From positions 62,001 through 126,000 of the forward strand of contig NIVC01001935.1 of assembly GCA_002269645.1 (NCBI GenBank): DNA of 64,000 bases, in the 5' to 3' direction. A program made the translations under genes and the position numbers. The notes under the pieces are model-generated. The model was not told the DNA's origin and ran no database searches. It saw only the letters and a list, made by a program, of their open reading frames with translations. This DNA comes from Macrostomum lignano. Taxonomy: Eukaryota. This document shows, piece by piece, positions 20,680 to 56,500 of the stretch. How positions within the stretch are numbered: the first letter of the stretch is position 1; every line of letters starts with the position of its first letter.

Positions 20680-23600
20680 CTACAATAGCCTCAAACGCTT
20701 TCTTGGAGGCGAGCCACCCGCGCTGGGAGAATCCAGACATCGATGCCTGGTTTTAGAAGGCGGCTGCTGCTGCTGACCCGCTGATTCAATAGCGCTGAAG
20801 ATAATGGGGATAGTTGACAAATAATGAGGGCTGAGGCTGCGATCCCCACTCCCCCTCATACCGATCCCCCCCCCAACACTCTGATCCCCACTCTCTCTCA
20901 TTCCGATTATCACCCCTCACATCATGATCAGTACTCCCAACATTCTGATACCTACTCCCAACATTCTGATACCTACTCCCAACATTCTGATACCTACTCC
21001 CAACATTCTGATCCCTACTCCCAACATTCTGCTCCCCACTCCCAACATTCTGCTCCCCACTCCCAACATTCTGATCCCTACTCCCAACATTCTGATACCT
21101 ACTCCCAACATTCTGATCCCCACTCCCCACATTCTGCTCCCCACTCCCAACTGTTAGCGAAGGCCGAGTTGGCTTTAGAGGCGATTAAGAGGCGCTCGAT
21201 TGTGTATATATTTAATTGAAATAAAAGTGATGCCGCGCACTGAACGATAGCATAAAAGCTTACACCATAGACATCTCAGCCAATCAATAGTCTCTACATC
21301 ACCAACATTCTGCTCCCCACTCCCAACATTCTGCTACCCACTCCCAACATTCTGATCCCCACTCCCAACATTCTGATCCCCACTCCCAACATTCTGCTCA
21401 CCACTCCAAACATTCTGCTCACCACTCCCAACATTCTGCTCCCCACTCCCAACATTTTGCTCACCACTCCAAACATTCTGCTCCCCACTCCCAACATTCT
21501 GATCCCCACTCCCAACATTCTGATCCCCACTCCCAACATTCTGATCCCCACTCCCAACATTCTGATCCCCACTCCCCCGCATTCTCACAAGAAATGGAAA
21601 TACCCGAGCCTATCTGACAAAAGCAATTTATGATTTCTTACCGAACGGATCCGGAGCCACCTTGCCCCTGTCCCCCGCCGTCTCCCTCTCTGTTCAAACA
21701 GCTGAGCTCGACTCGGCCGCTCAGCCGATACCCGCCGGAGATGACAATCGGCAGATTGACAGACAGCCGCTTCCTGAGCATCGGCGGTGCCGCGCTGTCA
21801 CTGTCGTCGCCGCGGCCCGCTGCCGCTTGCTGGGGTCCGGCTGTGCTGGACGAAGGCAGGACGCTGCGGTTGCTGCTTAATGGGGGTGGCGGTTGATGTC
21901 GAATGCTGCACTCAGAGCCTTCATGGAGTGCTTTGAGTCTTTTCGGGCACTTCAGTCAGAAACGCAGCTGCTTAGAACATTCAGAGCGTGCCGCTACAAT
22001 CAGATCTTTCAGGTAGAGTGCCGCTACCCTCAGATCCTTCAGGTAGAGTGCCGCTACCCTCAGATCCTTCAGGTAAAGTGCCGCTACCCTCAGATCCTTC
22101 AGGTAAAGTGCCGCTACCCTCAGATCCTTCAGGTAGAGTGCCGCTACCCTCAGATCTTTCAGGTAGAGTGCCGCTACCCTCAGATCCTTCAGGTAGAGTG
22201 CCGCTACCCTCAGATCCTTCAGGTAGAGTGCCGCTACCCTCAGATCCTTCAGGTAGAGTGCCGCTACCCTCAGATCCTTCAGGTAGAGTGCCGCTACCCT
22301 CAGATCCTTCAGGTAAAGTGCCGCTACCCTCAGATCCTTCAGGTAAAGTGCCGCTACCCTCAGATCCTTCAGGTAAAGTGCCGCTACCCTCAGTTCCTTC
22401 AGGTAGAGTGCCGCTACCCTGGGATCCTTCAGGTAGAGTGCCGCTACCCTGGGATCCTTCAGGTAGAGTGCCGCTACCCTCAGATCCTTCAGGTAGAGTG
22501 CCGCTACCCTCAGATCCTTCAGGTAAAGTGCCGCTAAACTCAGATCCTTCAGGTAAAGTGCCGCTACCCTCAGATCCTTCAGGTAAAGTGCCGCTACCCT
22601 CAGATCTTTCAGGTAGAGTGCCGCTACCCTGGGATCCTTCAGGTAGAGTGCCGCTACCCTCAGATCCTTCAGGTAAAGTGCCGCTACCCTCAGATCCTTC
22701 AGGTAAAGTGCCGCTACCCTCAGTTCCTTCAGGTAGAGTGCCGCTACCCTCAGATCATTCAGGTAGAGTGCCGCTACCCTCAGATCCTTCAGGTAAAGTG
22801 CCGCTACCCTCAGTTCCTTCAGGTAGAGTGCCGCTACCCTCAGTTCCTTCAGGTAGAGTGCCGCTACCCTCAGATCTTTCAGGTAGAGTGCCAATACCCT
22901 CAGATCTTTCAGGTAGAGTGCCGCTACCCTCAGATCTTTCAGGTAGAGTGCCGCTACCCTCAGATCTTTCAGGTAGAGTGCCGCTACCCTCAGATCCTTC
23001 AGGTAGAGTGCCGCTACCCTGGGATCCTTCAGGTAAAGTGCCGCTACCCTCAGTTCCTTCAGGTAGAGTGCCGCTACCCTGGGATCCTTCAGGTAGAGTG
23101 CCGCTACCCTCAGATCCTTCAGGTAGAGTGCCGCTACCCTCAGATCCTTCAGGTAAAGTGCCGCTACCCTCAGTTCCTTCAGGTAGAGTGCCGCTACCCT
23201 CAGATCCTTCAGGTAGAGTGCCGCTACCCTCAGATCCTTCAGGTAGAGTGCCGCTACCCTCAGTACCTTCAGGTAGAGTGCCGCTACCCTCAGTTCCTTC
23301 AGGTAGAGTGCCGCTACCCTGGGATCCTTCAGGTAGAGTGCCGCTACCCTGGGATCCTTCAGGTAGAGTGCCGCTACCCTGGGATCCTTCAGGTAGAGTG
23401 CCGCTACCCTCAGATCCTTCAGGTAGAGTGCCGCTACCCTCAGATCTTTCAGGTAGAGTGCCGCTACCCTCAGATCCTTCAGGTAGAGTGCCGCTACCCT
23501 CAGATCCTTCAGGTAAAGTGCCGCTACCCTCAGATCTTTCAGGTAGAGTGCCGCTACCCTCAGATCCTTCAGGTAGAGTGCCGCTACCCTCAGTTCCTTC

Positions 23601-24824
23601 AGGTAGAGTGCCAATACCCTCAGATCCTTCAGGTAGAGTGCCGCTACCCTCAGATCCTTCAGGTAAAGTGCCGCTACCCTCAGTTCCTTCAGGTAGAGTG
23701 CCGCTACCCTCAGTTCCTTCAGGTAGAGTGCCGCTACCCTGGGATCCTTCAGGTAGAGTGCCGCTACCCTGGGATCCTTCAGGTAGAGTGCCGCTACCCT
23801 CAGATCCTTCAGGTAAAGTGCCGCTACCCTGGGATCCTTCAGGTAGAGTGCCGCTACCCTCAGATCTTTCAGGTAGAGTGCCAATACCCTCAGATCTTTG
23901 AAGTAGAGTGCCAATACCCTCAGGTCCTTCAGGTAGAGTACCAATACCCCCAGATCTTTGAAGTAGAGTGCCGCTACCCTCAGTTCCTTCAGGTAGAGTG
24001 CCAATACCCCCTAGATCTTTGAAGTAGAGTGCCAATACCCTCAGGTCCTTCAGGTAGTGCCAATACCCTCAGATCTTTGAGGTAGAGTGCCACTACCCTC
24101 AGATCTTTCAGATCGAGTCAGTTCTCCAGTCAGTTCACAGAACTCCCCTCAACAAAACCAAGCAGAAGGGCAAGAGACCGGCCACCCACCAACTCAATGA
24201 AGGCGCGTCATTTCTGACAGCGGACACAGGCGTGGCCGCGGCAGTCCGCAGCTGAATGGTAGCTCGCATTGACAGCAGGGGAGTCGGCGGCAGCACGATG
24301 GGCATGCGGATGCCGCGCACCAGGGTCTGGCCTGGCAGTGGGGGCTCCTCAGCCGTGTCGGGCAAAGACGGAGGCGAAGCCGTTGCGAGCTTCGGCAGCT
24401 GCACTGTGGAGCAGCAGGCCGCGGTGCCGGAACCTGCCGAGCAGTCAGCAGCAGCTGCAGCATCTGCAGTAGTGAATTCCCGCACAACCGTGTCAAAGAT
24501 GGCGGACAGGTTGTCGGCCATGGAGGCTGGCTGGCGCCGCCTTGGCTTCTTCTTCTTGCCTTGCCTGGCCGTCTTGTCCTGCCGCTGCAGCAGCCGCTCC
24601 ATCTTGGCCACCCGGGAGTGTACCAGAGTCTCGGCCTTCTGCACCAGCTCGGCAAACGCTGAGCCAGCCGCTGCGGCAGACTCAGGCCCGTCGGCCGATA
24701 CCAGATAGTCCTCCTTCTCCAGGTTCAACACCAGGTTGAGCTCCGCCTCGCTGGCGGATGACACCATCGCCTCCAGGTGGCTGAGAACCTCCATGTAGTG
24801 CGGCATGCTGGAACTGGGCCGCAT
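20680..24824 (-). CDS. Orphan protein, ~337 aa: helical N-terminal half, low-complexity C-terminal half, two basic NLS-like motifs
   Basis: Exons 24824-24190, 21905-21642, 20794-20680; two phase-2 GT-AG introns; total 1014 nt = 338 codons; CACCACCATG start context; GC3-rich codons; motifs GKKKKPRRR and C-terminal PPRKRLRLL. No family recognised. Confidence 0.7.
20925..21580. repeat. 21-bp minisatellite (CTCCCAACATTCTGATCCCCA) in two blocks (20925-21150, 21300-21580), orphan-gene intron 2
   Basis: Tandem unit read directly; a unique ~150-bp spacer separates the blocks. Confidence 0.92.
21990..24115. repeat. 30-bp minisatellite (GCCGCTACCCTCAGATCCTTCAGGTAGAGT), ~70 copies, orphan-gene intron 1
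   Basis: Highly homogeneous tandem array; it explains the long ORFs 21956-24004, 21988-23901 and 22755-24035. Confidence 0.97.
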
Positions 24825-28467: not shown

Positions 28468-31400
28468 ATGGAAAATAGCACTTGTCTGCTATTTCCCCTT
28501 GAACCACAAAAATGTGTACGTTTTTTATAATTCTTATGATTTGTGTTTATTGTCTTGAATTGAACTCTGATAGTCTGATACTTCCATATTCGTTGAATTA
28601 TTCTTGATCTTTAGGGCTTGATTTTCACCTCGGGTTTCGGGCAGTTGGGAAGCTAGAAACTGGAATTAAATGAGTAGAACATTTAATGCAGTCTTCTAAA
28701 TTAAATAGTAAAAGGAAAATACTTTTTTACTTCTTCGACTTTTTTGGCTATTTTGGACTTAATTTTATCAATTAGCATCAATATTTCATTTTAGACCACG
28801 ATCGTCACTATTAAAAGGGTTAATGCTACATTTTCGATAGCATTCTGGTAAGTGGGTTTTTTCGAGATTGTGACAAAATACCTCATTGAATATTTTTTAT
28901 TCAATCATTTCATTCTGTTCCTCCATATACTTTCATTGTACTGTTCAACTATTTTGCAGCATTCTGATGTTATTTATGATATGGCTATTCAAATTCTACA
29001 AGCTTTTTGTATATCGACTCATCACCTACCTAACTATTGCAACTCTGTTTGATTGCATTATTTATCTTTTGGTAAGCAACTTGTTTGGTTGTACTTTACT
29101 ATACTAGCTAAGCTTCAATTTTGGCATGGTATTAACTGGAGTATTTTGCCTTATTTCAGGGTGAGCCACAGGAAGACAGTGCAACATGCTTGTTTGAAGG
29201 CTTCTGGCTTACTTACTCAGGTCTGGTGCCACTACTGTGCCATTTCTAAGTACACCATGTTGGCACTAATATATATAATATATACTAATATATGAAAACA
29301 ATCTCAATTCTCTCTGCAGATTGGAATGTTGTTCTGTGGATTGTCTTCATTACCATTTACCTGTTTCTAGTCACCGTGAAGTCTATTAAAACTGATCGAT
29401 TCGAATGGTATGGCATTTTTACACTCAAATTCGTTTATTGCACCAACTGTGCTATCATAGATAGTCTATACATGCAGTTCATTAGAAATACATAACTGAA
29501 CCGCTTAGCTTTGAAACAACAGTTTTAACGTCATATACAATTAACTGCATATTTCATTAGTACGGGTATCCACTGACTGCTTCACACTTTTGGTGGTCTC
29601 GTATGAATACTGAGTCACTACCCAATGTCATGTTCAACTGCACAGCACGTTTAAACATGGCAACGTGCTAAAAGCTTTAAGTTGCACACTGCGTCGTTTT
29701 TGCATTAATAGCATGTCCTGCTGCATTTAGCCACAACACTGCTCCTGACTTCCAATCGTTTTTCAAAAGTTAGCAAATAAATTATTTCGATTACAAACTA
29801 CTTTTCGAATAGTATGTTTAAAATATTCATTAAAACAGCTGGGCGAACAACTCTGAATCAAACTGGTTAAAACGGAGGGTCTGATGACTCTGTAACACCA
29901 TTTTGCATCCTGAGTTCTGTTAACCCTGTCGCAGGGTTTACGTCGTCACGGGTTTCCTGCTGCCGGTTCTGCCCGCCTCGCTGCCCTTCGCCGGGTCGGC
30001 CTACGGGCCCGCCGGCGCCTGGTGCTGGATCACCGACACCGCCTGGCGAATGGCCGTGTGGTTCGTGCCCGTGCTGCTGCTGCTGCTGGCCATCCTGACC
30101 GTGTACATCATCATCTTGACTCGGATTCGTCGACGTACCACCACTTGGTCTGGGATGTACGGCGAGGAGTCCGCGGCGGCGGTTGCTACAGCCGCTGTTC
30201 AGCTGCAGGAGCAGCTGTACCCCCTGCTGGCCTATCCGTGCATCTTCCTGGCGCTCAACCTGCTGCCCTTTGTCAACAGGATCAACAATGCGGCCTCCGC
30301 TGAGCCGAGCTTCGTTCTGTACCTGCTGAGTGCGGTCAGCTCTCCGCTTATTGGTGCGTTTGGAGGCTGCTTGACTGAGCTGTGCTTCAGGTGGAATCTG
30401 CCAGGTGTTTGAGGTGTCCTGCGTGCTTGACTGAGCTGTGCTTCAGGTGGAATCTGCCAGGTGTTTGAGGTGTCCTGCGTGCTTGACTGAGCTGTGCTTC
30501 AGGTGGAATCTGCCAGGTGCTTGAGGTGTCCTGCGTGCTTGACTGAGCTGTGCTTCAGGTGGAATCTGCCAGGTGTTTGAGGTGTCCTGCGTGCTTGACT
30601 GAGCTGTGCTTCAGGTGGAATCTGCCAGGTGTTTGAGGTGTCCTGCGTGCTTGACTGAGCTGTGCTTCAGGTGGAATCTGCCAGGTGCTTGAGGTGTCCT
30701 GCGTGCTTGACTGAGCTGTGCTTCAGGTGGAATCTGCCAGGTGTTTGAGGTGTCCTGCGTGCTTGACTGAGCTGTGCTTCAGGTGGAATCTGCCAGGTGC
30801 TTGAGGTGTCCTGCGTGCTTGACTGAGCTGTGCTTCAGGTGGAATCTGCCAGGTGTTTGAGGTGTCCAGTGTGCTTGACTAAGCTGTGCTTCAGGTGGAA
30901 TCTGCCAGGTGTTTGAGGTGTCCTGTGTGCTTGACTGAGCTGTGCTTCAGGTGGAATCTGCCAGGTGTTTGAGGTGTCCTGCGTGCTTGACTGAGCTGTG
31001 CTTCAGGTGGAATCTGCCAGGTGTTTGAGGTGTCCTGCGTGCTTGACTGAGCTGTGCTTCAGGTGGAATCTGCCAGGTGTTTGAGGTGTCCAGTGTGCTT
31101 GACTAAGCTGTGCTTCAGGTGGAATCTGCCAGGTGTTTGAGGTGTCCTGTGTGCTTGACTGAGCTGTGCTTCAGGTGGAATCTGCCAGGTGTTTGAGGTG
31201 TCCTGCGTGCTTGACTGAGCTGTGCTTCAGGTGGAATCTTCCAGATGTTTGAGGTGTCCTGCGTGCTTGACTGAGCTGTGCTTCAGGTGGAATCTGCCAG
31301 GTGTTTGAGGTGTCCTGCGTACTGTTTTTGCTGTACTGCGGTTTGAGTTCGTGGTAGTATACTCGAAGTGTACCTGTGGATTTATAAGTTCAACTAATTT

Positions 31401-34952: not shown

Positions 34953-37733
34953 ATGAGCTGCTGCTTTTGCTTCTGGAAGCAATTTTATCCCTACCGTAAG
35001 TCCCTCCCGGGCAGTTGCTGCCGCTGCTGTCAGCCCCTCTGCTGCTGGAAGAAACGAAGAAACGTCAGATGCCGCTCTCGTCGTCTCAACAGCAGCAGCG
35101 GCACCCGCTGCGACACCACCGGAGAGCCGCTTCAGCCGCGTCGGCAGCCGCCGTCCCCAGCCTGGCCGGCGCCATTCAGCGCGGCTGCTTCGCCGAGGCC
35201 CGCCACCTGCTGGACCTGCCGGAGGGCAGCGACGCCGCGGACCAGCCGGAGCCCGCGGAGGGCCGCACGCCGCTGATTTTGTGCGCGTTGATCCGCGACT
35301 CCGCCTGGGCGGTCAGCCTGGCGCGCCAGCTGCTGGAACGCGGCGCCAGAGTCGGCGCCAGAGACGCGCGCCGCGGCATGAACGCGCTGCACTACGCGTG
35401 CGCCTGCGGTCGGGTGCAGCTGGCGCGGCTGTTCCTGCAGGCCATCGACTTCCGGGTGCGCGGCCTGACTGTCTTTGATGGCTTTGGCTCTCGCGCCCTG
35501 GTTCGATGCTGTGCGCGGGGGGGGGGTTGTCTTGCTATTCACAGCAATGAGGGCCAACCCCAAGGCGGGGGGGTTGTCTTGCTATTCACAGCAATGAGGG
35601 CCAACCCCCAAGGCGGGGAGGTTGTCTTGCTATTCACAGCAATGAGGGCCAACCCCAAGGCGGGGAGGTTGTCGTGCAATTCACAGCAATGAGGGCCAAC
35701 CCCAAGGCTTCAATCCCTGAGGGGTTGTCGTGCAATTCACAGCAATGAGGGCCAACCTCCAAGGCTTCAATCCCTGAGGGGTTGTCGTGCAATTCACAGC
35801 AATGAGGGCCAACCTCCAAGGCTTCAATCCCTGAGGGGTTGTCGTGCAATTCACAGCAATGAGGGCCAACCTCCAAGGCTTCAATCCCTGGGGAGGGGGT
35901 TGTCGTGCGATTCACAGCAATGAGGGCCAACCCCAAGGCTTCAATCCCTGGGGAGGGGGTTGTCGTGCAATTCACAGCAATGAGGGCCAACCCCAAGGCT
36001 TCAATCCCTGGGGAGGGGGTTGTCGTGTAATTCACAGCAATGAGGGCCAACCCCAAGGCTTCAATCCCTGAGGGGTTGTCGTGCGATTCACAGCAATGAG
36101 GGCCAACCTCCAAGGCTTCAATCCCTGGGGAGGGGGTTGTCGTGCGATTCACAGCAATGAGGGCCAACCTCCAAGGCTTCAATCCCTGGGGAGGGGGTTG
36201 TCGTGCGATTCACAGCAATGAGGGCCAACCTCCAAGGCTTCAATCCCTCCATTTTTAACTGCCCCCAGCATTCATGACATTCTTCTGGAAAAAACTTTTT
36301 CAGCTGGACGCCGTCGACCGATGGGGCAACTCGCCGATGCACTTCGCCGCCATGTCGGCCAGCAACTCCGGCCAGCTGTTGCGCCTCCTGAGCGCCGCCC
36401 TGCGCCGCTACCAGCTGCCCGCCGAGACCGCCAACAGGGCCGGCCTCACGCCGCTCGGCCTGGCCAGAGCCTGCGACCGGCGGGAGGCGACACGGGTGCT
36501 CGAGGAGCTGCAGGAGCTTCAGGACGTTCGGCAGCCCTCGGGTTGGAATTTGAGGGGATTGCTAATCTAGTCAATCACAGATTTTTACGGATACAGTGGG
36601 TTGCTTATTGATCCCATAGATAAATAGTCTAGATAATCAGGATTGCCTGTCCTGACTCTCAGGGGCTCGTAGCCAGTCCTGACTCTCAGGGCCTCGTAGC
36701 CAGTACTGACTCTCAGGGGCTCGTAGCCAGTCCTGACTCTCAAGTCTCAGGGGCTCGTAGCCAGTCCTGACTCTCAGGGGCTCGTAGCCAGTCCTGACTC
36801 AATTTTTGCTCAACTTCGCACTACCGAATCTCCTTGACGCAGGCTGCCTGTCCAGCTTCAACGCTGCCTCATCGGCGGCAGCGGCGTCGGCCTCCGTGGC
36901 CAGCATGTTCAGGCCGTGCGATTCCGACTTCATCGTGGCGGCGGGGTCTCCGCCTGACCGGGCGCCAACGGGCGCCTCCGAAGCCGCGCCAGCGGGCGAA
37001 CCCGAGGGTGAGTGCCGCACCATCTCGTTTGGGGTTGCGCCACCTCATTTTGGTGGGTGGCGCCATTTCATTTTGGTGGGTGGCGCCATTTCATTTGCTG
37101 GGTGGCGCCATTTCATTTTGGTTCGGTGGCGCCATTTTATTTTGGTGGGTGGCGCCATTTTATTTTGGTGGGTGGCGCCATTTAATTTGGTAGGTGGCGC
37201 CGTTTCCTTTCTCCCACTCTTCCTCCCCTTCCATATTCTCAGCTGGTCGAGCCCGCAGCGCCGCCCGCAGCCGTACCACCTCCGCAGGCGGGCGCTGCCC
37301 CAGCGCCAAGCGCGACATCCCCCGCCTGTTCCACAACTTCGAGTTCCACTGCTCGCCGCTGTACCGGCCGCCGCCGCGGGCCCCGGACCCCAGCCTGTAC
37401 GCCACCGACTTCTTCCTGCGCTTCCAGCCGCCGCCTCTGCCGCCTTCGCAGCAGCACCGGCCGGGCGGAGACGGCGGCGGCGGCAGTGGAGACCCGGCGA
37501 ATGGCGCCGACGCGCCTCACGGGAGGCGCCGTCGCGAGGGCGTCTCGGGTGCGGCGGCGGGCAGCGCGCCGGCATCCAGACGGTCGAAGCGCAGCTCCAC
37601 AGCCACGGCGGCTTCGCTGACAACGGCGAGCTCCGCCGCGGCCGGCGCTGGAGGAGAGGTCGTGGGTTCGAGTCGCCGACGCCCGGGCCGAATCAGCCGG
37701 GTGGCCTTCAACCGAGACGATGCTCAGCCGTGA
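34953..37733 (+). CDS. Ankyrin-repeat protein, ANKRD63/ANKRD34-like
   Basis: Exons 34953-34995 (tentative; otherwise start at ATG 35069), 35034-35455, 36304-36541, 36843-37007, 37243-37733; 1359 nt in frame. ANK motifs GRTPLILC...RQLLERGA, GMNALHYAC, DRWGNSPMHFAA, NRAGLTPLGLA. Confidence 0.85.
35520..36248. repeat. ~57-65-bp minisatellite (core GGGGTTGTCGTGCAATTCACAGCAATGAGGGCCAACC), ankyrin-gene intron
   Basis: Tandem unit read directly. Confidence 0.92.
36645..36800. repeat. 27-bp minisatellite (GCCAGTCCTGACTCTCAGGGGCTCGTA), ankyrin-gene intron
   Basis: About 5.5 copies. Confidence 0.88.
37040..37200. repeat. ~22-bp minisatellite (GGTGGCGCCATTTTATTTTGGTG), ankyrin-gene intron
   Basis: About 7 copies. 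Confidence 0.85.
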
Positions 37734-38014: not shown

Positions 38015-38520
38015 TACCAGCTACAGAGGGGCACCAGCTACAGACAGAGGGCGCCAGCTACAGACAGGGGCACCAGCTACAGACAGGGGTGCCAACTACA
38101 AACAGGAGTGCCAGCTACGAACAGGGGCGCCAGCTACAGACAGGGGCGCCAGCTACAGAGAGGGCGCCAGCTACAAACAGAAGCGCGAGCTACAGACAGA
38201 GGGCGCCAGCTACAGAGAGGGCGCCAGTCAAAGAGGCAACGCCAGCTACAGACAGGGCGCAATCTACAGACAGGGTGCCAGCTACAGACAGGGGCGCCAG
38301 CTACAGACAGAGGGCGCCAGCTACAGACAGAGGGCGCCAGCTACAGACAGGGGTGCCAGCTACAGACAGGGGCGCCAGCTACAGACAGAGGGCGCCAGCT
38401 ACAGACAGAGGGCGCCAGCTACAGACAGGGGTGCCAGCTACAGACAGAGGGCGCCAGCTACGGAGAGGGCGCCAGTCAAAGAGGCGGCGCCAGTCAAAGA
38501 GGCAGCGCCAGCTACAGAGG
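38015..38520. repeat. ~20-21-bp minisatellite (GGCGCCAGCTACAGACAGAG), intergenic
   Basis: Tandem unit read directly. Confidence 0.9.
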
Positions 38521-38876: not shown

Positions 38877-39880
38877 ATGAATTTTCTTACTGCGGTGGCG
38901 ATGGCTGGTGTGCTGGCTGGCGTCGCGAGCTCCTATGGAAACGAGGCGAGTCAGCTGTCCATCGGGGAGCTCCACAAGCCTTGAGCACGAGCTGTCAAAT
39001 CTCTGGAACTTTTCAGTCGAAGCAGTGCTGTGATGCTGCCTCGGAGCTTCTCCTGGTAGCTCTGGTCAGTTGTCACCTCCAGAGAGGTGCCCTGGAGCTT
39101 CTCCTGGTAGCTCTGGTCAGTTGTCACCTCCAGAGAGGTGCCCTGGAGCTTCTCCTGGTAGCTCTGATCAGTTGTCACCTCCAGAGAGGTGCCCTGGAGC
39201 TTCTCCTGGTAGCTCTGGTCAGTTGTCACCTCCAGAGAGGTGCCCTGGAGCTTCTCCTGGTAGCTCTGATCAGTTGTCACCTCCAGAGAGGTGCCCTGGA
39301 GCTTCTCCTGGTAGCTCTGGTCAGTTGTCACCTTCAGAGAGGTGCCCTGGAGCTTCTCCTGGTAGCTCTGGTCAGTTGTCACCTTCAGAGAGGTGCCCTG
39401 GAGCTTCTCCTGGTAGCTCTGATCAGTTGTCACCTCCAGAGAGGTGCCGGGGCATGTTCCACAACCCGAACATGTTGTGGGCCCAGATCACGGATGATGA
39501 TGTTCGGATCGGTGAGTGTAACCATTGCATGCATGCTTGTTTGCTCAGAGTGTCAGTGCTCAGGGACCAGCGTGACTTCGCGGTTTCTGACTGCGGATTG
39601 ACTTGTCGTCTTGACTTGTTTCGTCGCCCAAAGCCCCCCCCCCGGCGACCTGATTGACTAATAAAGTCGTATCAACGCCTAAGAGATGACTGAAACCGTT
39701 TAATCAGTTCGCAGGAGTGCATTCGCACCAGAAGAGCCTCATGAGCTGAACTGCATGCTGGTGGACCCGGAAGACATCGTCAAGTCCTGCTGCTGCCGGC
39801 CCTGCACTCGCGGCTATATGTTCGGCTTCTGCGCCAGCCCAATACCGCTGCGATCCAGGCCCAGACCGGGGCTTTACTGA
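38877..39880 (+). CDS. ilp: Insulin/relaxin-superfamily prepropeptide (ILP-A), ~127 aa; middle exons uncertain
   Basis: Signal-peptide exon 38877-38945 (MNFLTAVAMAGVLAGVASSYGNE, GC donor); candidate exons 39017-39086 and 39440-39511; last exon 39708-39880 with dibasic RR and A-chain DIVKSCCCRPCTRGYMFGFC (CC-x3-C-x8-C) at 39773-39832. The model totals 384 nt in frame. Confidence 0.75.
39043..39448. repeat. 51-bp tandem repeat, 8 copies, inside ILP-A at the B-chain
   Basis: Unit GGAGCTTCTCCTGGTAGCTCTGGTCAGTTGTCACCTCCAGAGAGGTGCCCT. Confidence 0.95.
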
Positions 39881-40546
39881 TCAATGCTAGGGAATCACTT
39901 GGCTGCTCCGAGATTATTGTTGATTGAAGTGGCTAAAATCTGCGCCTTTTCCATCTGCTACTTTTCTGGTTGAAATGTACTTTTAAAAGCAGTTTTGTTA
40001 AATAAGCAATGGTTAAATAAACAGACAATGAGAGATCACCTACTGAAAAGTAGTAAAAGAAGAATTGGAAGCGATGGATGAATGGCGTTGACGTTAAATG
40101 AACGCGGCTTTATCTATTGTGGTATATGCGCATATAAAGTACCTGGTATATTTCATTTCACACACATTGGCCATAGACACTGCCCCTGTTAACCCTGCGT
40201 TCTAAAGCTAATATAAGGAGAGCAAATATAAAGGAAATGAATGTTAACATCGGCATGGCAAGAGCCCGCTACCAAGCTTGAGATTACTAACCATAATTCA
40301 CCTGGACTTCGAGTTGGTAACGGAAGTCGGATGTAACATCTATCTATAACATACTTTTAGAATTTTGAAAATATCTGCCGGCATTCAGAAGTTACGAGCT
40401 TATGTCCAATCCAGAACCGCGCCCTTGGGTATAACTTACAGAAACTAAAAAAAACAGGTACGGAGTACGACCTATGGGATGACTCAACACGATTGATAAG
40501 TCATTTTCTGGAAGTTATACCCAAGGGCACGCTAGTAGATTGGAAA

Positions 40547-42045
40547 TCACTCATAACGGAATAAAAACACAAAGTGCTGCTGCTCAAGCTGCAGGGACCG
40601 CGCAGGCGAGGCCGAGGGCGAACGGCGAGATATCCTGATAGGCTTTTGACTTTTTGAAGGCTTTGGCCCAGAGACGCGTTCTCTGACTTCTCCCCCCTTT
40701 CTGGCCACTGCGTGGCTGGCGGGTGAAGTATTTTGTAGTAGTGAGTTGTTGTAAACTCTATAATAACACAAATGTACGACGCTGTAAAAGACTGTATTGC
40801 GGTTCTGACTTCGAACTCAACGCTGGCGCAGTGCTGAAGCAGGTAACTCCGCCTGCACCAAGTGCAGCAGCATCTGGTGAACAGGTCGTTACTCCTATTT
40901 GCGATATTAATTCTGCATTGCAAGTCCCTGCGTGTCGGCGGCCGGCGGCGCTGCCCTGAAGTCCTCTCCACTGAAAGTGTGCGGTTTCAATAAACCTTAA
41001 ATTCTCTTTCAGGCTTTACCGATAAAAAATGGTAAAAATTGTTTGACTGCCTACTCGGACCGCCTATGAAAGCTGCAGACCTCTTTAAGAGGCTCGCGTG
41101 GCTAGGGCCGTCGTAGAGACCACCCCGATGAGAGCACAAATCCACGACCGTATTGATTAGCGACCGGCCGCAAAGATTGATGAGATCATCCTGCAACAGG
41201 GGGGACTACGGCTTGAGATTGATGAGATCATCCTGCAACAGGGGGGACTACGGCTTGAGATTGATGAGATCATCCTGCAACAGGGGGGACTACGGCTTGA
41301 GATTGATGAGATCATCCTGCAACAGGGGGGACTACGGCTTGAGATTGATGAGATCATCCTGCAACAGGGGGGACTACGGCTTGAGATTGATGAGATCATC
41401 CTGCAACAGGGGGGACTACGGCTTGAGATTGATGAGATCATCCTGCAACAGGGGGGATTACGGCTTGAGATTGATGAGATCATCCTGCAACAGGAGGGGG
41501 ATTACGGCTTGAGATTGATGAGATCATCCTGCAACAGGGGGGATTACGGCTTGAGATTGATGAGATCATCCTGCAACAGGGGGGACTACGGCTTGAGATT
41601 GATGAGATCATCCTGCAACAGGGGGGATTACGGCTTGAGATTGATGAGATCATCCTGCAACAGGAGGGGGATTACGGCTTGAGATTGATGAGATCATCCT
41701 GCAACAGGAGGGGGATTACGGCTTGAGATTGATGAGATCATCCTGCAACAGGAGGGGTTACGGCTTGAGATTGATGAGACCATAATGCAACAGGGGGGCT
41801 CACTTCCATGGCGTGTCAGTGCCCACAGCTCCTCTGCAAACTGACTCACTATGAGTCCGAGTTCCAGATTGGCTAAGGCTAAGGTGGATTTAAGGCAGAT
41901 TCACCTACCTTAAATCCACCTACCCTAGTAGGCTAAGGTAGATCCACCTTTACAGATTGGCCAAGGTGGATCTCACCTCAAACCCAGCGGAATCCACGGC
42001 CGCAACAGCCAGGCTGGCCAAGAAAAGCTCAGTCAGGAACTTCAT
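40547..42045 (-). CDS. ilp: Insulin/IGF-like prepropeptide (ILP-B), ~188 aa, with basic C-terminal extension
   Basis: Exons 42045-41977 (signal MKFLTELFLASLAVAAVDSAGFE), 41190-41055 or -41020 (B chain NLCGRSLINTVVDLC, C-x11-C, then KR), 40970-40778 (RRR/RR then DLFTRCCCTWCRRSYLLQHC), 40715-40547 (Arg/Lys/Ser-rich tail). The model with the 41055 donor totals 567 nt in frame. Confidence 0.85.
41173..41800. repeat. 42-bp tandem repeat, ~15 copies, duplicating the ILP-B intron 1 / exon 2 junction
   Basis: Minus-strand unit AAGCCGTAGTCCCCCCTGTTGCAG/GATGATCTCATCAATCTC; the last copy runs into the true B-chain exon. Confidence 0.95.
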
Positions 42046-42387: not shown

Positions 42388-42418
<31 letters not shown>

Positions 42419-42695
42419 TGACTGACTGACTGACTGACTGACTGACTGACTGACTGACTGACTGACTGACTGACTGACTGACTGACTGACTGACTGACTG
42501 ACTGACTGACTGACTGACTGACTGACTGACTGACTGACTGACTGACTGACTGACTGACTGACTGACTGACTGACTGACTGACTGACTGACTGACTGACTG
42601 ACTGACTGACTGACTGACTGACTGACTGACTGACTGACTGACTGACTGACTGACTGACTGACTGACTGACTGACTGACTGACTGACTGACTGACT

Positions 42696-42774
<79 letters not shown>

Positions 42775-44607
42775 TGACTGACTGACTGACTGACTGACTG
42801 ACTGACTGACTGACTGACTGACTGACTGACTGACTGACTGACTGACTGACTGACTGACTGACTGACTGACTGACTGACTGACTGACTGACTGACTGACTG
42901 ACTGACTGACTGACTGACTGACTGACTGACTGACTGACTGACTGACTGACTGACTGACTGACTGACTGACTGACTGACTGACTGACTGACTGACTGACTG
43001 ACTGACTGACTGACTGACTGACTGACTGACTGACTGACTGACTGACTGACTGACTGACTGACTGACTGACTGACTGACTGACTGACTGACTGACTGACTG
43101 ACTGACTGACTGACTGACTGACTGACTGACTGACTGACTGACTGACTGACTGACTGACTGACTGACTGACTGACTGACTGACTGACTGACTGACTGACTG
43201 ACTGACTGACTGACTGACTGACTGACTGACTGACTGACTGACTGACTGACTGACTGACTGACTGACTGACTGACTGACTGACTGACTGACTGACTGACTG
43301 ACTGACTGACTGACTGACTGACTGACTGACTGACTGACTGACTGACTGACTGACTGACTGACTGACTGACTGACTGACTGACTGACTGACTGACTGACTG
43401 ACTGACTGACTGACTGACTGACTGACTGACTGACTGACTGACTGACTGACTGACTGACTGACTGACTGACTGACTGACTGACTGACTGACTGACTGACTG
43501 ACTGACTGACTGACTGACTGACTGACTGACTGACTGACTGACTGACTGACTGACTGACTGACTGACTGACTGACTGACTGACTGACTGACTGACTGACTG
43601 ACTGACTGACTGACTGACTGACTGACTGACTGACTGACTGACTGACTGACTGACTGACTGACTGACTGACTGACTGACTGACTGACTGACTGACTGACTG
43701 ACTGACTGACTGACTGACTGACTGACTGACTGACTGACTGACTGACTGACTGACTGACTGACTGACTGACTGACTGACTGACTGACTGACTGACTGACTG
43801 ACTGACTGACTGACTGACTGACTGACTGACTGACTGACTGACTGACTGACTGACTGACTGACTGACTGACTGACTGACTGACTGACTGACTGACTGACTG
43901 ACTGACTGACTGACTGACTGACTGACTGACTGACTGACTGACTGACTGACTGACTGACTGACTGACTGACTGACTGACTGACTGACTGACTGACTGACTG
44001 ACTGACTGACTGACTGACTGACTGACTGACTGACTGACTGACTGACTGACTGACTGACTGACTGACTGACTGACTGACTGACTGACTGACTGACTGACTG
44101 ACTGACTGACTGACTGACTGACTGACTGACTGACTGACTGACTGACTGACTGACTGACTGACTGACTGACTGACTGACTGACTGACTGACTGACTGACTG
44201 ACTGACTGACTGACTGACTGACTGACTGACTGACTGACTGACTGACTGACTGACTGACTGACTGACTGACTGACTGACTGACTGACTGACTGACTGACTG
44301 ACTGACTGACTGACTGACTGACTGACTGACTGACTGACTGACTGACTGACTGACTGACTGACTGACTGACTGACTGACTGACTGACTGACTGACTGACTG
44401 ACTGACTGACTGACTGACTGACTGACTGACTGACTGACTGACTGACTGACTGACTGACTGACTGACTGACTGACTGACTGACTGACTGACTGACTGACTG
44501 ACTGACTGACTGACTGACTGACTGACTGACTGACTGACTGACTGACTGACTGACTGACTGACTGACTGACTGACTGACTGACTGACTGACTGACTGACTG
44601 ACTGACT

Positions 44608-44658
<51 letters not shown>

Positions 44659-45349
44659 TGACTGACTGACTGACTGACTGACTGACTGACTGACTGACTG
44701 ACTGACTGACTGACTGACTGACTGACTGACTGACTGACTGACTGACTGACTGACTGACTGACTGACTGACTGACTGACTGACTGACTGACTGACTGACTG
44801 ACTGACTGACTGACTGACTGACTGACTGACTGACTGACTGACTGACTGACTGACTGACTGACTGACTGACTGACTGACTGACTGACTGACTGACTGACTG
44901 ACTGACTGACTGACTGACTGACTGACTGACTGACTGACTGACTGACTGACTGACTGACTGACTGACTGACTGACTGACTGACTGACTGACTGACTGACTG
45001 ACTGACTGACTGACTGACTGACTGACTGACTGACTGACTGACTGACTGACTGACTGACTGACTGACTGACTGACTGACTGACTGACTGACTGACTGACTG
45101 ACTGACTGACTGACTGACTGACTGACTGACTGACTGACTGACTGACTGACTGACTGACTGACTGACTGACTGACTGACTGACTGACTGACTGACTGACTG
45201 ACTGACTGACTGACTGACTGACTGACTGACTGACTGACTGACTGACTGACTGACTGACTGACTGACTGACTGACTGACTGACTGACTGACTGACTGACTG
45301 ACTGACTGACTGACTGACTGACTGACTGACTGACTGACTGACTGACTGA
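42388..45349. repeat. (ACTG)n tetranucleotide tract, ~740 units, near-perfect
   Basis: Read directly; only four variants seen (ACTT at ~42392, 42720, 42748, 44632). Confidence 0.98.
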
Positions 45350-45920
45350 CACCAGATCGATCCCTACTGACAACAGTAGTAAATTAAAGTACGCGTGTGC
45401 CACCCAGAGCAGGTGCTACGGCAGGCCCTGACAGGTAGGAACTGGTGTGAAGGAAACAACACTTACAAACGAAGCAAACTCCTCTGGCTTTGGTTTAGGA
45501 TGAGGTTTAGAATAGGGTTTAGGATAGGGTTTAGGATAGGGTTTAGGATAGTGTTTTGTCAGGTTCGGTAGTCACTTAGTTTGATTATTTATTCAGACGC
45601 AGATTTTACTTTAGGCCAAATTTGTTAAAATCAATTTAACAAAACAGAAGCGATGGTTACTTTAGCAGTAGTATTTCACGCATAAAACTGTTTTTTAGGT
45701 TTTTTATGCGTAAATAGAAACACTGCAGTAAGCCTACATTTGAAGGGAAATGTAGGAAAGTTTTTGCAGAGAATTCCCACTCCGGGCTCTGGGCTCAGGC
45801 CTCCTTGACAGACTCCTGGACTGCTCCCGACCCTTCCTAATGTCTTTGCAATTGAAACTCTTGGATTCGTCCATCATTGGGGAAATTTTATTAATTGTTT
45901 CTGAGAGAGCTCACAGCCAC

Positions 45921-50500: not shown

Positions 50501-53500
50501 CCTGGAGATCCCCGTGGAGCCGCGCGACCTGGAGCAGATCCTCAGCGACTGCAAGGAGACGCTGAAGTACGCCGTCAAGACCGGCCACCCGCGCTTCTTC
50601 AACCAGCTCTCGTCGGGCCTTGACGTCATCGCCATGGCTGGCGAGTGGCTGACGGCCGCCACCAACACCAACATGTTGGTGTGGGGAATGGCGGGTGTGG
50701 GAAATGGCGGGTTGGGAATGGCGGGTGCGGAGAATGGCGAATAAGAAATGGCGGTTGTGAGGAATGGCGAGTGGGGAATGGCGGGTGGGGAATGGCGGGT
50801 GCGGAGAATGGCGGATGAGAAATGGCGGTTGTGAGTAATGGCGGGTGTGGAGAATGGCAGGTGTAGGGAATGGAAGGTGTGGAGAATGGCAGGTGTGGAG
50901 AATGGCAGGTGTGGGGAATGGCAGGTGTGGGGAATTGCAGGTGTGGGGAATGGAAGGTGTGAAGAATGGCAGGTGTGGGGAATGGCAGGTTTGGAGAATG
51001 GCAGGTGTAGGGAATTTCAGGTGTGTGGAATTTCAGGTGTGTGGAATTTCAGGTGTGGGGAAAGGTGGGTGTGGGGAATGGCAGGTGTGAAGAATGGCGG
51101 GTGTGGGGAATGGCGGGTGTGGAGAATGGCAGGTGTGGAGAATGGCAGGTGTGGGGAATGGCAGGTGTGGGGAATTGCAGGTGTGGGGAATGGAAGGTGG
51201 GAAGAATGGCAGGTGTGGGGAATGGCAGGTTTGGAGAATGGCAGGTGTAGGGAATTTCAGGTGTGTGGAATTTCAGGTGTGTGGAATTTCAGGTGTGGGG
51301 AAAGGTGAGTGTGGGGAATGGCGAGTGTGGGAAATTGGGTGGAGAATGGAGCGCGGGGAGCGTGGAACCAATTGATGGAACACCGGAGAAACCGGCAGTG
51401 CTTTGCCCCCCCCCCCGCGCAGGTTCACCTACGAGATCGCGCCTGTTTTCGTGCTCATGGAGGAGGTCACCCTGCAGAAAATGCGAGAGCACATCGGCTG
51501 GGAGAGCGGCGACGGCATCCTGGCTCCTGGCGGCAGCATCTCCAACCTGTACGCCGCTATGGTGGCCCGGTACAACCGCTTCCCGGAGGTGAAGATGCGG
51601 GGCATGCGCGCCGTGCCGGAGTTGGCGATGTTCACCTCGAAGGACGCGCACTACTCGGTGAAGAAGTCGGCCGCGATCCTGGGCATGGGCATGGACAGCG
51701 TCTACCTGGTGGACACGGACAACAGGTAGTCGAAGCTGTCTTTGTCAGACTTGTGGTTTGGCCCTCCTGGCTATTAAATCCGCGGCAGTCGTCGGCTAAT
51801 TTTCGTGCTCAAGTCACAAATGAATGCTGGGCCGCTCGTGGAATCGAACCAGATGCGTTTCCTGCTCTCGAAAAAGCCTCCCTGGAACTTTCCATATCTT
51901 ATTTCCCGAAATGTCTCAAGAAGAGTTTCTCATCTCTGCCTTTTCAACCCCGCATGTCTCAGGGGCAAGATGCTGCCCGAGCACCTGGAGCAGCTGATCG
52001 GACTCGCCCGCAGCCGCGGTCAGGAGCCCTTCTTCGTCAGCGCCACCGGCGGCACAACCGTGCTGGGCGCCTTCGACCCGCTGGACGCGATCGCGGACGT
52101 GTGCGAGCGGCACGGGCTCTGGTTCCACGTGGACACGGCCTGGGGCGGCGGCGTGCTGCTCAGCCAGCGACACCGCCACCTGCTGGCCGGGGTGCAGCGT
52201 GCCGACTCGGTCACCTGGAATCCCCACAAGCTGATGGGCGTGACGCTGCAGTGCTCGGTGATCCTCCTGCCGGAGAGGCACATCGGCCTGCTGCAAGGCT
52301 GCAACGGCATGCAGGCGGACTACCTGTTCCAGCAGGACAAGCAGTACGACGTGAGCTACGACACGGGCGACAAGAGCATCCAGTGCGGCCGCAGGAACGA
52401 CATCTTCAAGCTCTGGCTGTCCTGGAGGGCCAAGGTGACGGCTGGGGCAGTTTCTCGATGACTGGGGCAGATTCTCAATGACTGGGGCAGAATCTCAATG
52501 ACTGGGGCAGATTCTCAATGACTGGGGCAGATTCTCAATGACTGGGGCAGATTCTCAATGACTGGGGCAGATTCTCAATGACTGGGGCAGATTCTCAATG
52601 ACTGGGGCAGATTCTCAATGACTGGGGCAGATTTCCAATGACTAGGGCAGATTCCCGATGACTGGGGCAGATTCTCAATGACTGGGGCAGATTCTCAATG
52701 ACTGGGGCAGATTCTCAATGACTGGGGCAGATTCTCAATGACTGGGGCAGATTTCCAATGACTGGGGCAGATTCCCGATGACTGGGGCAGATTCTCAATG
52801 ACTGGGGCAGATTCTCAATGACTGGGGCAGATTCTCAATGACTGGGGCAGATTCTCAATGACTGGGGCAGATTCTCAATGACTGGGGCAGATTCTCAATG
52901 ACTGGGGCAGATTCTCAATGACTGGGGCAGATTCCCGATGACTGGGGCAGATTCTCAATGACTGAGGCAGATTCTCAATGACTGGGGCAGATTCTCAATG
53001 ACTGGGGCAGATTCTCAATGACTGGGGCAGATTCTCAATGACTGGGGCAGATTCTCAATGACTGGGGCAGAATCTCAATGACTGGGGCAGATTCTCAATG
53101 ACTGGGGCAGATTTCCAATGACTAGGGCAGATTCCCGATGACTGGGGCAGATTCTCAATGACTGGGGCAGATTCTCAATGACTGGGGCAGATTCTCAATG
53201 ACTGGGGCAGATTCTCAATGACTGGGGCAGATTCTCAATGACTGGGGCAGATTCCCGATGACTGGGGCAGATTCTCAATGACTGGGGCAGATTCTCAATG
53301 ACTGGGGCAGATTCTCAATGACTGGGGCAGATTCTCAATGACTGGGGCAGATTCTCAATGACTGGGGCAGATTCTCAATGACTGGGGCAGATTCTCAATG
53401 ACTGGGGCAGATTCTCAATGACTGGGGCAGATTCTCAATGACTGGGGCAGAATCTCAATGACTGGGGCAGATTCTCAATGACTGAGGCAGATTCTCAATG

Positions 53501-56500
53501 ACTGGGGCAGATTCTCAATGACTGGGGCAGATTCCCGATGACTGGGGCAGATTCTCAATGACTGAGGCAGATTCTCAATGACTGGGGCAGATTCTCAATG
53601 ACTGGGGCAGATTCCCAGTGACTGGGGCAGATTCTCAATGACTGGGGCAGATTCCCGATGACTGGGGCAGATTCTCAATGACTGAGGCAGATTCTCAATG
53701 ACTGGGGCAGATTCTCAATGACTGGGGCAGATTCCCAGTGACTGGGGCAGATTTCCAATGACTGGGGCAGATTCTCAATGACTGGGGCAGATTTCCAATG
53801 ACTAGGGCAGATCTCAATGACTGGGGCAGATTCCCAATGACTAGGGCAGATCTCAATGACTGGAGCAGATTCTCTAGGACTGAGAACCCTAAGATTCTCA
53901 GAGACTGAGAACAAGGTTAATTGGAAATATTACTCTCGATAGGATCTTGCAGATCGGATACACACTGCAGTTTCACTTGAGCACATAATGCATTTTGCTG
54001 CAATTGCAGGGTGATGAAGGCTACGGGGAGCAGGTTGACTACCTCATCGACCTGGCCAAGTGAGTCTCCATCACCAGACGCTGATATATAAGTTAAGTCA
54101 GACCTGCTCACACCACACCACACCTGCGTTGCAGTTACCTGTGCCAGCAGCTGAAGAAGCGTCCCGGCTACGAGATGGTGATGGAGAAAGTAAGCGGCGG
54201 ATTCTGGGAGCCTTAGTGAGCTGCTTAGAAACGCCCCCGGATCAGCTTCATCAGCTTTCTAATGCTGTTTTTTCATGGCGACAGATGCACAGTGCTCCAC
54301 TTGAGTCTCTATGATAAGGCTAAGATGATGCTGAAGATGATTCTGTGAATGATTTTGGGGATGATGCTGATATGAGGCTGAGATGGTGCTGAGATGAGTC
54401 TTAAGATGAGGTCGAGATAATGCTGGAAATAATTCTGGGATGATGCTGATATGAGGTTGGGCTGATGCTGATATGAGGCTGAGATGATGCTGATATGAGG
54501 TTGGCATGATGCTGGAGATGATGCTGATATGAGGTTGGCATGATGCTGGAGATGATGCTGATATGAGGTTGGGATGATGCTGATATGAGGCTGGGATGAT
54601 GCTGATATGAGGTTGGCATGATGCTGGAGATGATGCTGATATGAGGCTGGGATGATGCTGATATGAGGTTGGGCTGATGCTGATATGAGGCTGGGATGAT
54701 GCTGATATGAGGTTGGGCTGATGCTGATATGAGGTTGGGCTGATGCTGATATGAGGCTGGGATGATGCTGGAGATGATGCTGATATGAGGCTGGGATGAT
54801 GCTGATATGAGGTTGGGATGATGCTGATATGAGGCTGGGATGATGCTGATATGAGGTTGGCATGATGCTGGAGATGATGCTGATATGAGGTTGGCATGAT
54901 GCTGGAGATGATGCTGATATGAGGTTGGCATGATGCTGGAGATGATGCTGATATGAGGTTGGCATGATGCTGGAGATGATGCTGATATGAGGTTGGGATG
55001 ATGCTGGAGATGATGCTGATATGAGGTTGGGATGATGCTGGAGATGATGCTGATATGAGGTTGGGATGATGCTGATATGAGGTTGGCATGATGCTGATAT
55101 GAGGCTGGGATGATGCTGATATGAGGTTGGCATGATGCTGGAGATGATGCTGATATGAGGTTGGGATGATGCTGATATGAGGCTGGGATGATGCTGAGAT
55201 GAGGCTGAGATCATGCTGAGATGAGGCTGAGATGATGCTGGAGATGAGGCTGAGATGAGGCTGAGATGATGCTGGAGATGAGGCTGAGATGAGGCTGAGA
55301 TGAGGCTGAGATGATGCTGGAGATGAGGCTGAGATGAGGCTAAAGATGATGCTGAGGTGAGGCTGAGATGATGCTGATATGAGGCTGGGATCAGCCTAGA
55401 ATTTTTAGAACCACTGTTCAGTTGATCGGTAGCTCAAAGCAGCTTTCTAGCGCCGTTTTCATGGCGACAGACGCGCAATGCTCCACTTGTCTTGAGCCAC
55501 TCCGATCCCCCAAAATCCGCATTCGTTAATAATTGATGCGACAGGCCAGGTGTCTGAAACCCGCCGTGGCGCCTGAGCTCTGAACTGCTCGCATGGCCAC
55601 CCCCCACCCGGGTTTGGGAAGGCCAGAGGTAGCTAATTACCGCAGTTCGCTGATCCCAGAGACAGCGCGACAGGCGCAATCTGGCGGCTGCTGTGACTGG
55701 GCAGCGGCTCAACCACCGCCCTGCTCACCGCCTCTTGCAGCCCGACTTTGTCAACGTCTGCTTCTGGTACGTGCCGGAGAAGTTCCGCTCGATGAAGCCG
55801 GGACCGGAGAGGGACAGCGCCATCAACGAGGTGAGGCCGCGTTGATGGAGTCGAGGAGATGCTGCATCCCCACTGATTGGACGACTTCAATCTGTCTGTC
55901 TCCCTCTCTGTCTCCCTCTCTGTCTCCCTCTCTGTCTCCCTCTCTGTCTCCCTCTCTGTCTCCCTCTCTGTCTCCTTCTCTGTCTCCCTCTCTGTCTCCC
56001 CTCTGTCTCCCTCTCTGTCTCCCTCTCTGTCTCCCTCTCTGTCTCCCTCTCTGTCTCCCTCTCTGTCTCCCTCTCTGTCTCCCTCTCTGTCTCCTTCTCT
56101 GTCTCCCTCTCTGTCTCCCTCTCTGTCTCCCTCTCTGTCTCCCTCTCTGTCTCCCTCTCTGTCTCCCTCTCTGTCTCCCTCTCTGTCTCCCTCTCTGTCT
56201 CCCTCTCTGTCTCCCTCTCTGTCTCCCTCTCTGTCTCCCTCTCTGTCTCCCTCTCTGTCTCCCTCTCTGTCTCCCTCTCTGTCTCCTTCTCTGTCTCCCT
56301 CTCTGTCTCCCTCTCTGTCTCCCTCTCTGTCTCCCTCTCTGTCTCCCTCTCTGTCTCCCTCTCTGTCTCCCTCTCTGTCTCCCTCTCTATCTCGCTCTCT
56401 GTCTCCCTCTCTGTCTCCCTCTCTGTCTCCCTCTCTGTCTCCCTCTCTGTCTCCCTCTCTGTCTCCCTCTCTGTCTCCCTCTCTGTCTCCCTCTCTGTCT

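Follow-up and report, generated by a model that had tools for sequence, protein, structure and literature searches.

A 64,000-nucleotide stretch of the genome of the flatworm Macrostomum lignano (GenBank assembly GCA_002269645.1, contig NIVC01001935.1, positions 62,001 to 126,000 of the forward strand; hereafter the window) carries two convergent, tail-to-tail genes of three predicted exons each, ILP-A on the plus strand (ATG at 38877) and ILP-B on the minus strand (ATG at 42045). The two genes probably make up a locus of flatworm insulin-like peptides (ILPs), in which ILP-B is structurally complete and ILP-A is a degenerate or diverged paralogue. Neither gene appears as an intact open reading frame (ORF) in the ORF listing of the window, and the preliminary description of the region, as two small multi-exon genes facing each other with no intact ORF, is matched by the sequence, in which every element that it listed is present. 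The first exons of 23 codons, each followed by a phase-0 intron, the canonical B chain of ILP-B and the CC-x3-C-x8-C arrangement in both genes (Table 1) are all borne out, as are the dibasic sites in both precursors (LLKR, RRR and TRR in ILP-B, VRR in ILP-A). The convergent layout holds as well, and the separation of about 670 bp that had been given for the two genes hinges on where ILP-B is taken to end: the gap is 620 bp from the ILP-A stop (39880) to the stop of the long ILP-B ORF (40501), and about 945 bp if measured to the end of the ILP-B A chain.

The ILP-B precursor combines a short hydrophobic segment of 23 residues, encoded by exon 1, with a B chain, a C-peptide and an A chain, the last lying in an exon 3 that encodes ...RRRPPTRRDLQCRINIANRSNDLFTRCCCTWCRRSYLLQHCAS... 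Its eight cysteines comprise the six canonical ones, the third of a CCC triplet and one located 14 residues upstream of that triplet. Candidate cleavage sites are the basic residues of LLKR/S after the B chain and of RRR and TRR/D ahead of an extended A chain. The hydrophobic segment scores z = 4.9 against exon 1 of ILP-A and z = 0.2 against the signal exon of an annotated M. lignano ILP gene. Two models are available for the second intron, both of which preserve the frame and yield products that differ within the C-peptide only. The phase-1 intron of Table 1 is preferred because M. lignano ILP genes have a phase-1 intron at this position; a phase-0 intron of 69 nt (40951-41019, TCG/GTAAAG ... 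gggcag/), with which exon 2 reaches 41020, is also possible.

Table 1. Features of the ILP-A and ILP-B locus, in window positions; slashes mark exon-intron boundaries.
Feature	Positions	Strand	Description
ILP-A exon 1	38877-38945	+	23 codons, MNFLTAVAMAGVLAGVASSYGNE, signal-peptide-like; phase 0
ILP-A intron 1 (model)	38946-39426	+	481 nt, GC-AG, GAG/GCGAGT ... ctctgatcag/
51-bp minisatellite, ILP-A intron 1	39043-39448	+	8 copies, 98% matches
ILP-A exon 2 (model)	39427-39511	+	LSPPERCRGMFHNPNMLWAQITDDDVRI + 1 nt, at B-chain position
ILP-A intron 2 (model)	39512-39707	+	196 nt, GTGAGT ... tttaatcag, phase 1
ILP-A exon 3	39708-39880	+	(V)RRSAFAPEEPHELNCMLVDPEDIVKSCCCRPCTRGYMFGFCASPIPLRSRPRPGLY; A chain CCCRPCTRGYMFGFC (CC-x3-C-x8-C) at 39788-39832; stop 39878-39880
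Candidate polyadenylation signal AATAAA of ILP-A	40016-40021	+	about 135 nt past the stop
Long hairpin between the ILP genes	40402-40547		43-nt arms, 84% complementary, 60-nt spacer
ILP-B exon 3	40501-40970	-	(M)ERTSGQRRRPPTRRDLQCRINIANRSNDLFTRCCCTWCRRSYLLQHCAS...; A chain CCCTWCRRSYLLQHC (CC-x3-C-x8-C) at 40872-40828; ORF stop 40501-40503
ILP-B intron 2	40971-41054	-	84 nt, phase 1, CCGA/GTAGGC ... cacactttcag/
ILP-B exon 2	41055-41190	-	DDLINLCGRSLINTVVDLCSHRGGLYDGPSHASLLKRSAAFIGGP, B chain and start of C-peptide (phase-1 model); B chain LCGRSLINTVVDLC (C-x11-C) at 41175-41134; acceptor ctgttgcag
42-bp minisatellite, ILP-B intron 1	41174-41798	-	14.7 copies, 97% matches
ILP-B intron 1	41191-41976	-	786 nt, GT-AG
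ILP-B exon 1	41977-42045	-	23 codons, MKFLTELFLASLAVAAVDSAGFE, donor GAG/GTGAGA, phase 0

Several lines of evidence support the assignment of ILP-B, from its sequence, to the insulin superfamily. Against the Pfam Insulin profile (PF00049), whose curated gathering threshold is 23 bits, the spliced product scores 26.8 bits under the phase-0 model and 27.1 bits under the phase-1 model, with the alignment covering profile positions 2-81 of 81, and an annotated M. lignano ILP (BOX15_Mlig006842g2) scores 26.4 bits against the same profile. A HMMER search of 1.84 billion cluster representatives returned one true match to ILP-B (E = 1.5e-6), the M. lignano protein A0A1I8FJR3, recorded in UniRef as 'IlGF domain-containing protein', and a profile search brought one more relative, BOX15_Mlig006842g2 itself. 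Identity between ILP-B and these two IlGF-domain proteins is 34-39%, and the blocks common to ILP-B and its M. lignano relatives read INxCGxxL..C..RGGxYD and N(R/K)SNDxxxxCCCxWCRxSYLxQxCA. Furthermore, all 12 matches in a phmmer search of ILP-B against PDB sequences were insulin, IGF-II or a nematode insulin-like peptide, at weak E-values of 0.17-6. A word-indexed protein search with ILP-B gave no match, and no study devoted to Macrostomum ILPs came up in a search of the literature.

The notion that no genes lie behind these motifs, and that repeat-rich DNA produced them by chance as pieces of ORFs, is effectively refuted. Long spurious ORFs do arise in this repeat-rich genome, and one of the three strict A-chain motif matches in the six-frame translation of the window, where block shuffles lead to an expectation of 0.1, falls at 62163 in a Cys/Trp low-complexity frame and is best regarded as noise. 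The CCCxxCx8C form of the motif, however, appeared in 0 of 200 shuffles, against two genuine occurrences within 1 kb, and ILP-B not only exceeds the Pfam threshold across both chains but also has specific homologues in M. lignano that share the position and phase of its first intron. A third CCCxxC fragment (61829-61888), just downstream of the ORF of another gene and followed by a stop, was treated as chance.

The paralogy of the two genes, which had been proposed beforehand, is upheld by both their outer exons. The first exons align without gaps over 38 of 69 identical nucleotides and 8 of 23 identical amino acids, with an alignment score of 34 that only 5 of 5000 shuffles reached (16.6 +/- 3.6; z = 4.9), and exon 1 of ILP-A also resembles the signal exon of BOX15_Mlig006842g2 (z = 3.5). 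The A-chain exon of ILP-A yields z = 8.6 against that of ILP-B and z = 13.4 against BOX15_Mlig006842g2. Moreover, a profile of ILP-B plus both M. lignano genes, with ILP-A left out, detects exon 3 of ILP-A (E = 1.6e-7) as its only match in the six-frame translation of the window besides the ILP-B exons. ILP-A is probably the product of a local duplication and lies inverted relative to ILP-B.

A second ILP pair in the same species provides a comparison. The annotated gene BOX15_Mlig006842g2 lies at 10001-10572 of a comparison locus taken from another M. lignano contig (NIVC01000300.1:40856-61427) and has three exons and no minisatellite; its first intron, in phase 0, comes after 24 codons and precedes the first B-chain Cys by six, and its second, in the C-peptide, is in phase 1. 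About 1.4 kb downstream on the same strand (11644-14440) there is a second ILP-like gene, which is missing from the called genes of that assembly. Exon 2 of this gene (~11977-12104) encodes a canonical B chain (ARWLTECGLRLIEEVTAACADWGGVYD...), with the same intron-1 position and a phase-1 donor, and exon 3 (~14267-14440) reads ...RCLTRSDDIVYNWCCKFCRVSYLPIRSELRPAQ... and lacks the last A-chain Cys (WCCKFCRVSYLPIRSEL); its exon 1 was not found in the comparison locus. The score of this gene against PF00049, 15.6 bits, is below the cut-off. A phase-0 first intron placed six codons before the first exon-2 Cys is common to ILP-B, the ILP-A model and both genes of the comparison locus, and a phase-1 second intron is seen in the latter two genes and in the ILP-A model, a phase-1 splice being likewise available in ILP-B. 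Like ILP-B, BOX15_Mlig006842g2 has eight cysteines, among them those of the block CCCxWCRxSYLxQxCA and an additional one ahead of the A chain, and the triple-Cys form CCCX2CX8C is present in ILP-A, ILP-B, A0A1I8FJR3 and BOX15_Mlig006842g2.

The comparison locus thus also holds one complete and one defective ILP gene, arranged head-to-tail there and tail-to-tail in the window. The defects differ, since the second gene of the comparison locus lacks the last A-chain Cys, whereas ILP-A is without the second Cys of the B chain and without any resemblance to B chains. The B chains of the comparison locus are closest to each other, and the third exons of ILP-A and ILP-B are each nearer to that of BOX15_Mlig006842g2 than to one another. 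An assignment of orthology between ILP-A or ILP-B and the two genes of the comparison locus was attempted and set aside, the scores disagreeing between exons. Given this second pair and the conflicting pairwise scores, the earlier suggestion that the cluster is lineage-specific is not established.

ILP-A presents a different picture in its middle exon. Splice sites consistent with those of the family give an intact ORF of 108 codons, in which all A-chain cysteines are kept; the first donor is of the GC type (AG/GCGAGT) and otherwise matches the consensus, and the second is a perfect GTGAGT. The modelled exon 2 encodes a single Cys, has Ala in place of the second and a Pro inside the would-be helix, for a precursor total of seven cysteines, and scores z <= 0.8 against flatworm B chains. 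PF00049 was matched by none of six alternative ILP-A models, even with E-values up to 10 allowed, and nothing like a B chain is read in any frame of 38946-39707, both candidate frames scoring z <= 0.9 against the flatworm B chains. When all six frames of the 64-kb window were searched, filters switched off, with a B-chain hidden Markov model (HMM) and with a family profile, the B chain of ILP-B was the sole one recovered. Of the earlier view that both are insulin-like genes, then, the part concerning ILP-B stands on its passing the Pfam Insulin profile, and the part concerning ILP-A, whose B chain is unrecognisable and whose spliced models give no match, is only half right. Judged by its sequence, ILP-A is a paralogue in which the signal and A-chain exons are conserved and the middle one cannot be recognised, and it would be either a decaying copy or a diverged derivative, rather than a demonstrated or canonical ILP.

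It is unlikely that both genes are functional canonical ILPs and that the models have simply overlooked the B chain of ILP-A. The intact three-exon ORF, with intron positions and phases typical of the family, the otherwise perfect consensus of the GC donor and the perfect second donor, the AATAAA signal and the full set of A-chain cysteines are what such a gene would display, and the 51-bp repeat has a frame, ALELLLVALVSCHLQRG, that is B-chain-like by eye. This look-alike frame, however, scores z <= 0.9 against five B chains, has C-x13-C spacing, is out of phase with exon 3 and would be repeated eightfold, and the window-wide profile searches and the PF00049 results just described likewise contradict a hidden B chain. 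With a Cys missing and B-chain identity lost, ILP-A is disfavoured as a canonical hormone. Among the models tried and rejected, those with exon 2 in frame 38801 (RGAGACSTTRTCC...) and those reading through the repeat (SKQCCDAASELLLVALVSCHLQRG..., single or eightfold) gave no insulin match and were out of phase with exon 3; for the eightfold read-through model the sole match, a spurious one caused by the repeat, was to a SelB-wing family. Chance was also taken to explain ELLLVALVSCHLQRG, the B-chain look-alike of the 51-bp repeat (z <= 0.9 against the five B chains).

A more serious possibility, although one held at somewhat below even probability, is that ILP-A is a non-functional pseudogene whose B-chain exon has been overwritten or degraded, possibly in connection with the expansion of the minisatellite at the junction. 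The loss of the Cys equivalent to B19, the Pro in the would-be helix, the GC donor of intron 1 and the absence of an HMM match for the ILP-A models are in line with decay, and the second gene of the comparison locus is defective too. Decay would nevertheless have been uneven, with signal (z = 4.9) and A-chain (z = 8.6-13.4) exons that are clearly homologous, six cysteines of the extended A chain retained, and 108 codons that run without frameshift or stop between strong splice signals. A long-dead pseudogene is disfavoured because of this uneven conservation, the strong splice signals and the open frame.

Several observations weigh against the reading of the locus as one complete ILP gene and one degenerate or diverged paralogue. 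The AlphaFold (AF2) models of ILP-B are of a confidence too low for use, with a predicted local distance difference test (pLDDT) score of 43 from the single sequence and 59.7 with a four-row alignment, and a Foldseek search of the PDB at this low confidence matched no insulin fold. ILP-B has no early stop, its frame staying open for 105 codons beyond the A-chain end at ...HCAS, whereas BOX15_Mlig006842g2 ends 7 residues past its last Cys. This tail has a GC content of 0.49, or 0.51 at third codon positions (GC3), and looks non-coding, the GC3 of the ILP exons being 0.58-0.72 and that of housekeeping exons 0.83-0.92, and the minus strand has neither AATAAA nor ATTAAA for ILP-B. For ILP-A, the conserved A chain and strong splice signals are unexpected in a long-dead pseudogene, and the exon-2 model rests solely on the analogy of splice position and phase. 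The chance of a stop-free run of 105 random codons is estimated at about 0.7%. The tail could be a C-terminal extension or the result of a lost stop or an assembly indel, and damage to the 3' end of ILP-B is one possibility. An extra intron after the A chain, which would give a short C-terminus, was considered and rejected, no phase-compatible pair of splice sites being found on reading the sequence.

Both genes carry a minisatellite at the junction of intron 1 and exon 2. In ILP-A the last 51-bp unit takes in the exon-2 acceptor together with 22 nt at the start of exon 2, and the units upstream of it hold the same acceptor and are open in frame, encoding the 17-amino-acid unit LSPPERCPGASPGSSGQ. 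Each 42-bp unit in ILP-B holds ctgttgcag/GATGATCTCATCAATCT; the real acceptor and the opening 17 nt of exon 2 come from the last unit, and the upstream units read DDLINLKP and then a stop. The 51-bp and 42-bp units are unrelated in sequence. Tandem Repeats Finder indicates that arrays with units of 8-186 bp make up about one third of the window by rough sum (for example at 3465-4385, 4908-5605, 15714-16934, 21988-24118, 30368-31320 and 52442-53882), with many long spurious ORFs. In the neighbouring Argonaute gene, four of the five introns resolved by tblastn consist largely of one array.

One interpretation of the junction arrays is that they are functional, serving as decoy 3' splice-site arrays that tune ILP output, non-productive in ILP-B and length-varying in ILP-A. 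Both arrays do extend across the acceptor and 17-22 nt into exon 2, a third array, of 23-bp units, abuts the exon-2 acceptor of the second gene of the comparison locus, in which 52-bp units repeated over 2 kb make up intron 2, and the ILP arrays come somewhat closer to the acceptor, which they reach, than those of the Argonaute introns, which end about 50-190 nt short of it. On the other hand, the share of minisatellite in the window and its presence in four of five Argonaute introns mean that arrays in ILP introns are expected, the three array units differ in sequence and length (51, 42 and 23 bp), and the annotated gene of the comparison locus has no array at all, which leaves a functional role highly improbable. 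Since arrays are to be expected in the introns of this genome, those of the ILP genes are read as a genome-wide intronic property, with amplification of the intron-1/exon-2 junction being incidental. It is also quite improbable that ILP-A, as a derivative within the insulin superfamily, is expressed and functional, in which case the B chain would have been swapped for an unrelated single-Cys peptide, the signal peptide and the extended five-Cys A chain kept and the N-terminal length varied through eight nearly identical in-frame acceptors in a minisatellite able to code, and that junction minisatellites would be recurrent modulators of ILPs in macrostomids.

The minisatellites had also been held to fragment the genes and to make automated annotation likely to miss them. 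Arrays are indeed present in intron 1 of both genes, where they reach over the exon-2 acceptor, and no exon is split by them. An effect on annotation is plausible by analogy, as in the comparison locus the repeat-free ILP gene was annotated and its repeat-filled neighbour was not. The locus offers in this respect a concrete example of how peptide-hormone genes become hard to annotate when their introns are full of minisatellite.

The A-chain signature CCCX(2)CX(8)C has been reported for the schistosome peptides SjILP, SmILP and ShILP (PMC5391603), which share it with ILP-A and ILP-B and are, as predicted for ILP-B, secreted prepro-peptides with B and A chains. Unlike the schistosome ILP genes, reported as having two exons and an intron of 8-12 kb (PMC5391603), the genes of the window have three exons and introns of 69-786 nt, and word-indexed, HMMER and profile searches gave no direct sequence match to schistosome ILPs. 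Vertebrate insulin and IGF-II (PDB 2mpi_B and 1igl_A) show the same C-x11-C and CC-x3-C-x8-C spacings as ILP-B, whose B chain NLCGRSLINTVVDLCSHRGGLYDGP aligns residue for residue with insulin and whose A chain aligns with IGF-II CCFRSCDLALLETYCA. The differences from vertebrate insulin consist of an extra Cys pair, formed by the CCC triplet and the upstream Cys, a long C-peptide and a possible long C-terminal extension.

A route of maturation may be proposed for ILP-B. The putative signal peptide would be removed first, and the chains would fold around the three canonical insulin disulfides and a fourth one, predicted between the additional Cys of the CCC triplet and the Cys lying 14 residues upstream in the N-terminally extended A chain. 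Prohormone convertases would then cleave at KR, RRR and RR to release a two-chain hormone, which by analogy with schistosome ILPs may activate a tyrosine kinase of the insulin-receptor type. This receptor-signalling model is adopted because SjILP reportedly binds the insulin receptors of the worm (PMC6480100).

ILP-B would probably act on growth, stem cells or reproduction. The planarian gene ilp-1, by the title of a 2012 article by Miller and Newmark cited in PMC6321970, reportedly regulates body size and adult stem cells, and control of this kind is the most likely role for an ILP of a free-living flatworm, the link being family membership only. Flatworm insulin-like signalling has been tied to body size, stem-cell activity and reproduction, and ILP-B, as a complete and previously unrecorded ILP gene with 39% identity to the closest relative in the databases, is a ligand candidate for studies in macrostomid flatworms. 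Both ILP-A and ILP-B are further members of a known hormone family and no new kind; what is known of the ILP family is unchanged by the locus, whose degenerate paralogue and junction arrays count as curiosities.

Between the two genes, the long hairpin overlaps the stop of the long ILP-B ORF; its RNA has a minimum free energy of -75.8 kcal/mol (z = -11 against shuffles), and the window has one copy of it and the comparison locus none. An Rfam scan of the window returned nothing. The hairpin could be an insertion resembling a miniature inverted-repeat transposable element (MITE) or a structured 3' element. A pure (GACT)n microsatellite of about 3 kb (42388-45350) starts 340 bp upstream of the ILP-B start codon. 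Other genes of the window include one of the Argonaute-1 type (4457-9910, plus strand), with PAZ and related domains, of which the exon searched finds its best matches in arthropod Ago1 clusters at 75-78% identity and none above 78%; an ankyrin-repeat ORF (35015-35692, plus strand); and a GAD/CSAD-like pyridoxal-dependent decarboxylase (PF00282; 50330-58464, plus strand). All three have a GC3 of about 0.83-0.92 and repeat-filled introns.

The comparison locus is as minisatellite-dense in its architecture as the window, and its second ILP-like gene is closely followed by an (AACT)n tract about 1 kb long. At 17594-18133 it also contains an annotated neuropeptide precursor of 124 amino acids, with a signal peptide and some nine copies of AWYVSPRLGKK in tandem, of the PRLamide type after amidation; no counterpart of this gene was found in the window. 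The flanking repeats gave no basis for a conclusion on synteny between the two loci, as the minisatellite family involved is dispersed, the microsatellites differ and the 80% DNA match is a short interspersed nuclear element (SINE). The minisatellite family, of 19-20-bp units with the core CGCCCCTGTCT, occurs upstream of ILP-A in the window (38017-38518) and as two arrays in the 20 kb of the comparison locus (8716-9240 and 19728-20417), where it likewise lies upstream of the ILP gene, in opposite orientation. The SINE-like element is tRNA-derived, begins GTAGCCCAGCGGTCTAGCGCAG...GGCTCGATTCCAAG, has an A-rich end and is 80% identical between window positions 12092-12442 and positions 16415-16749 of the comparison locus.

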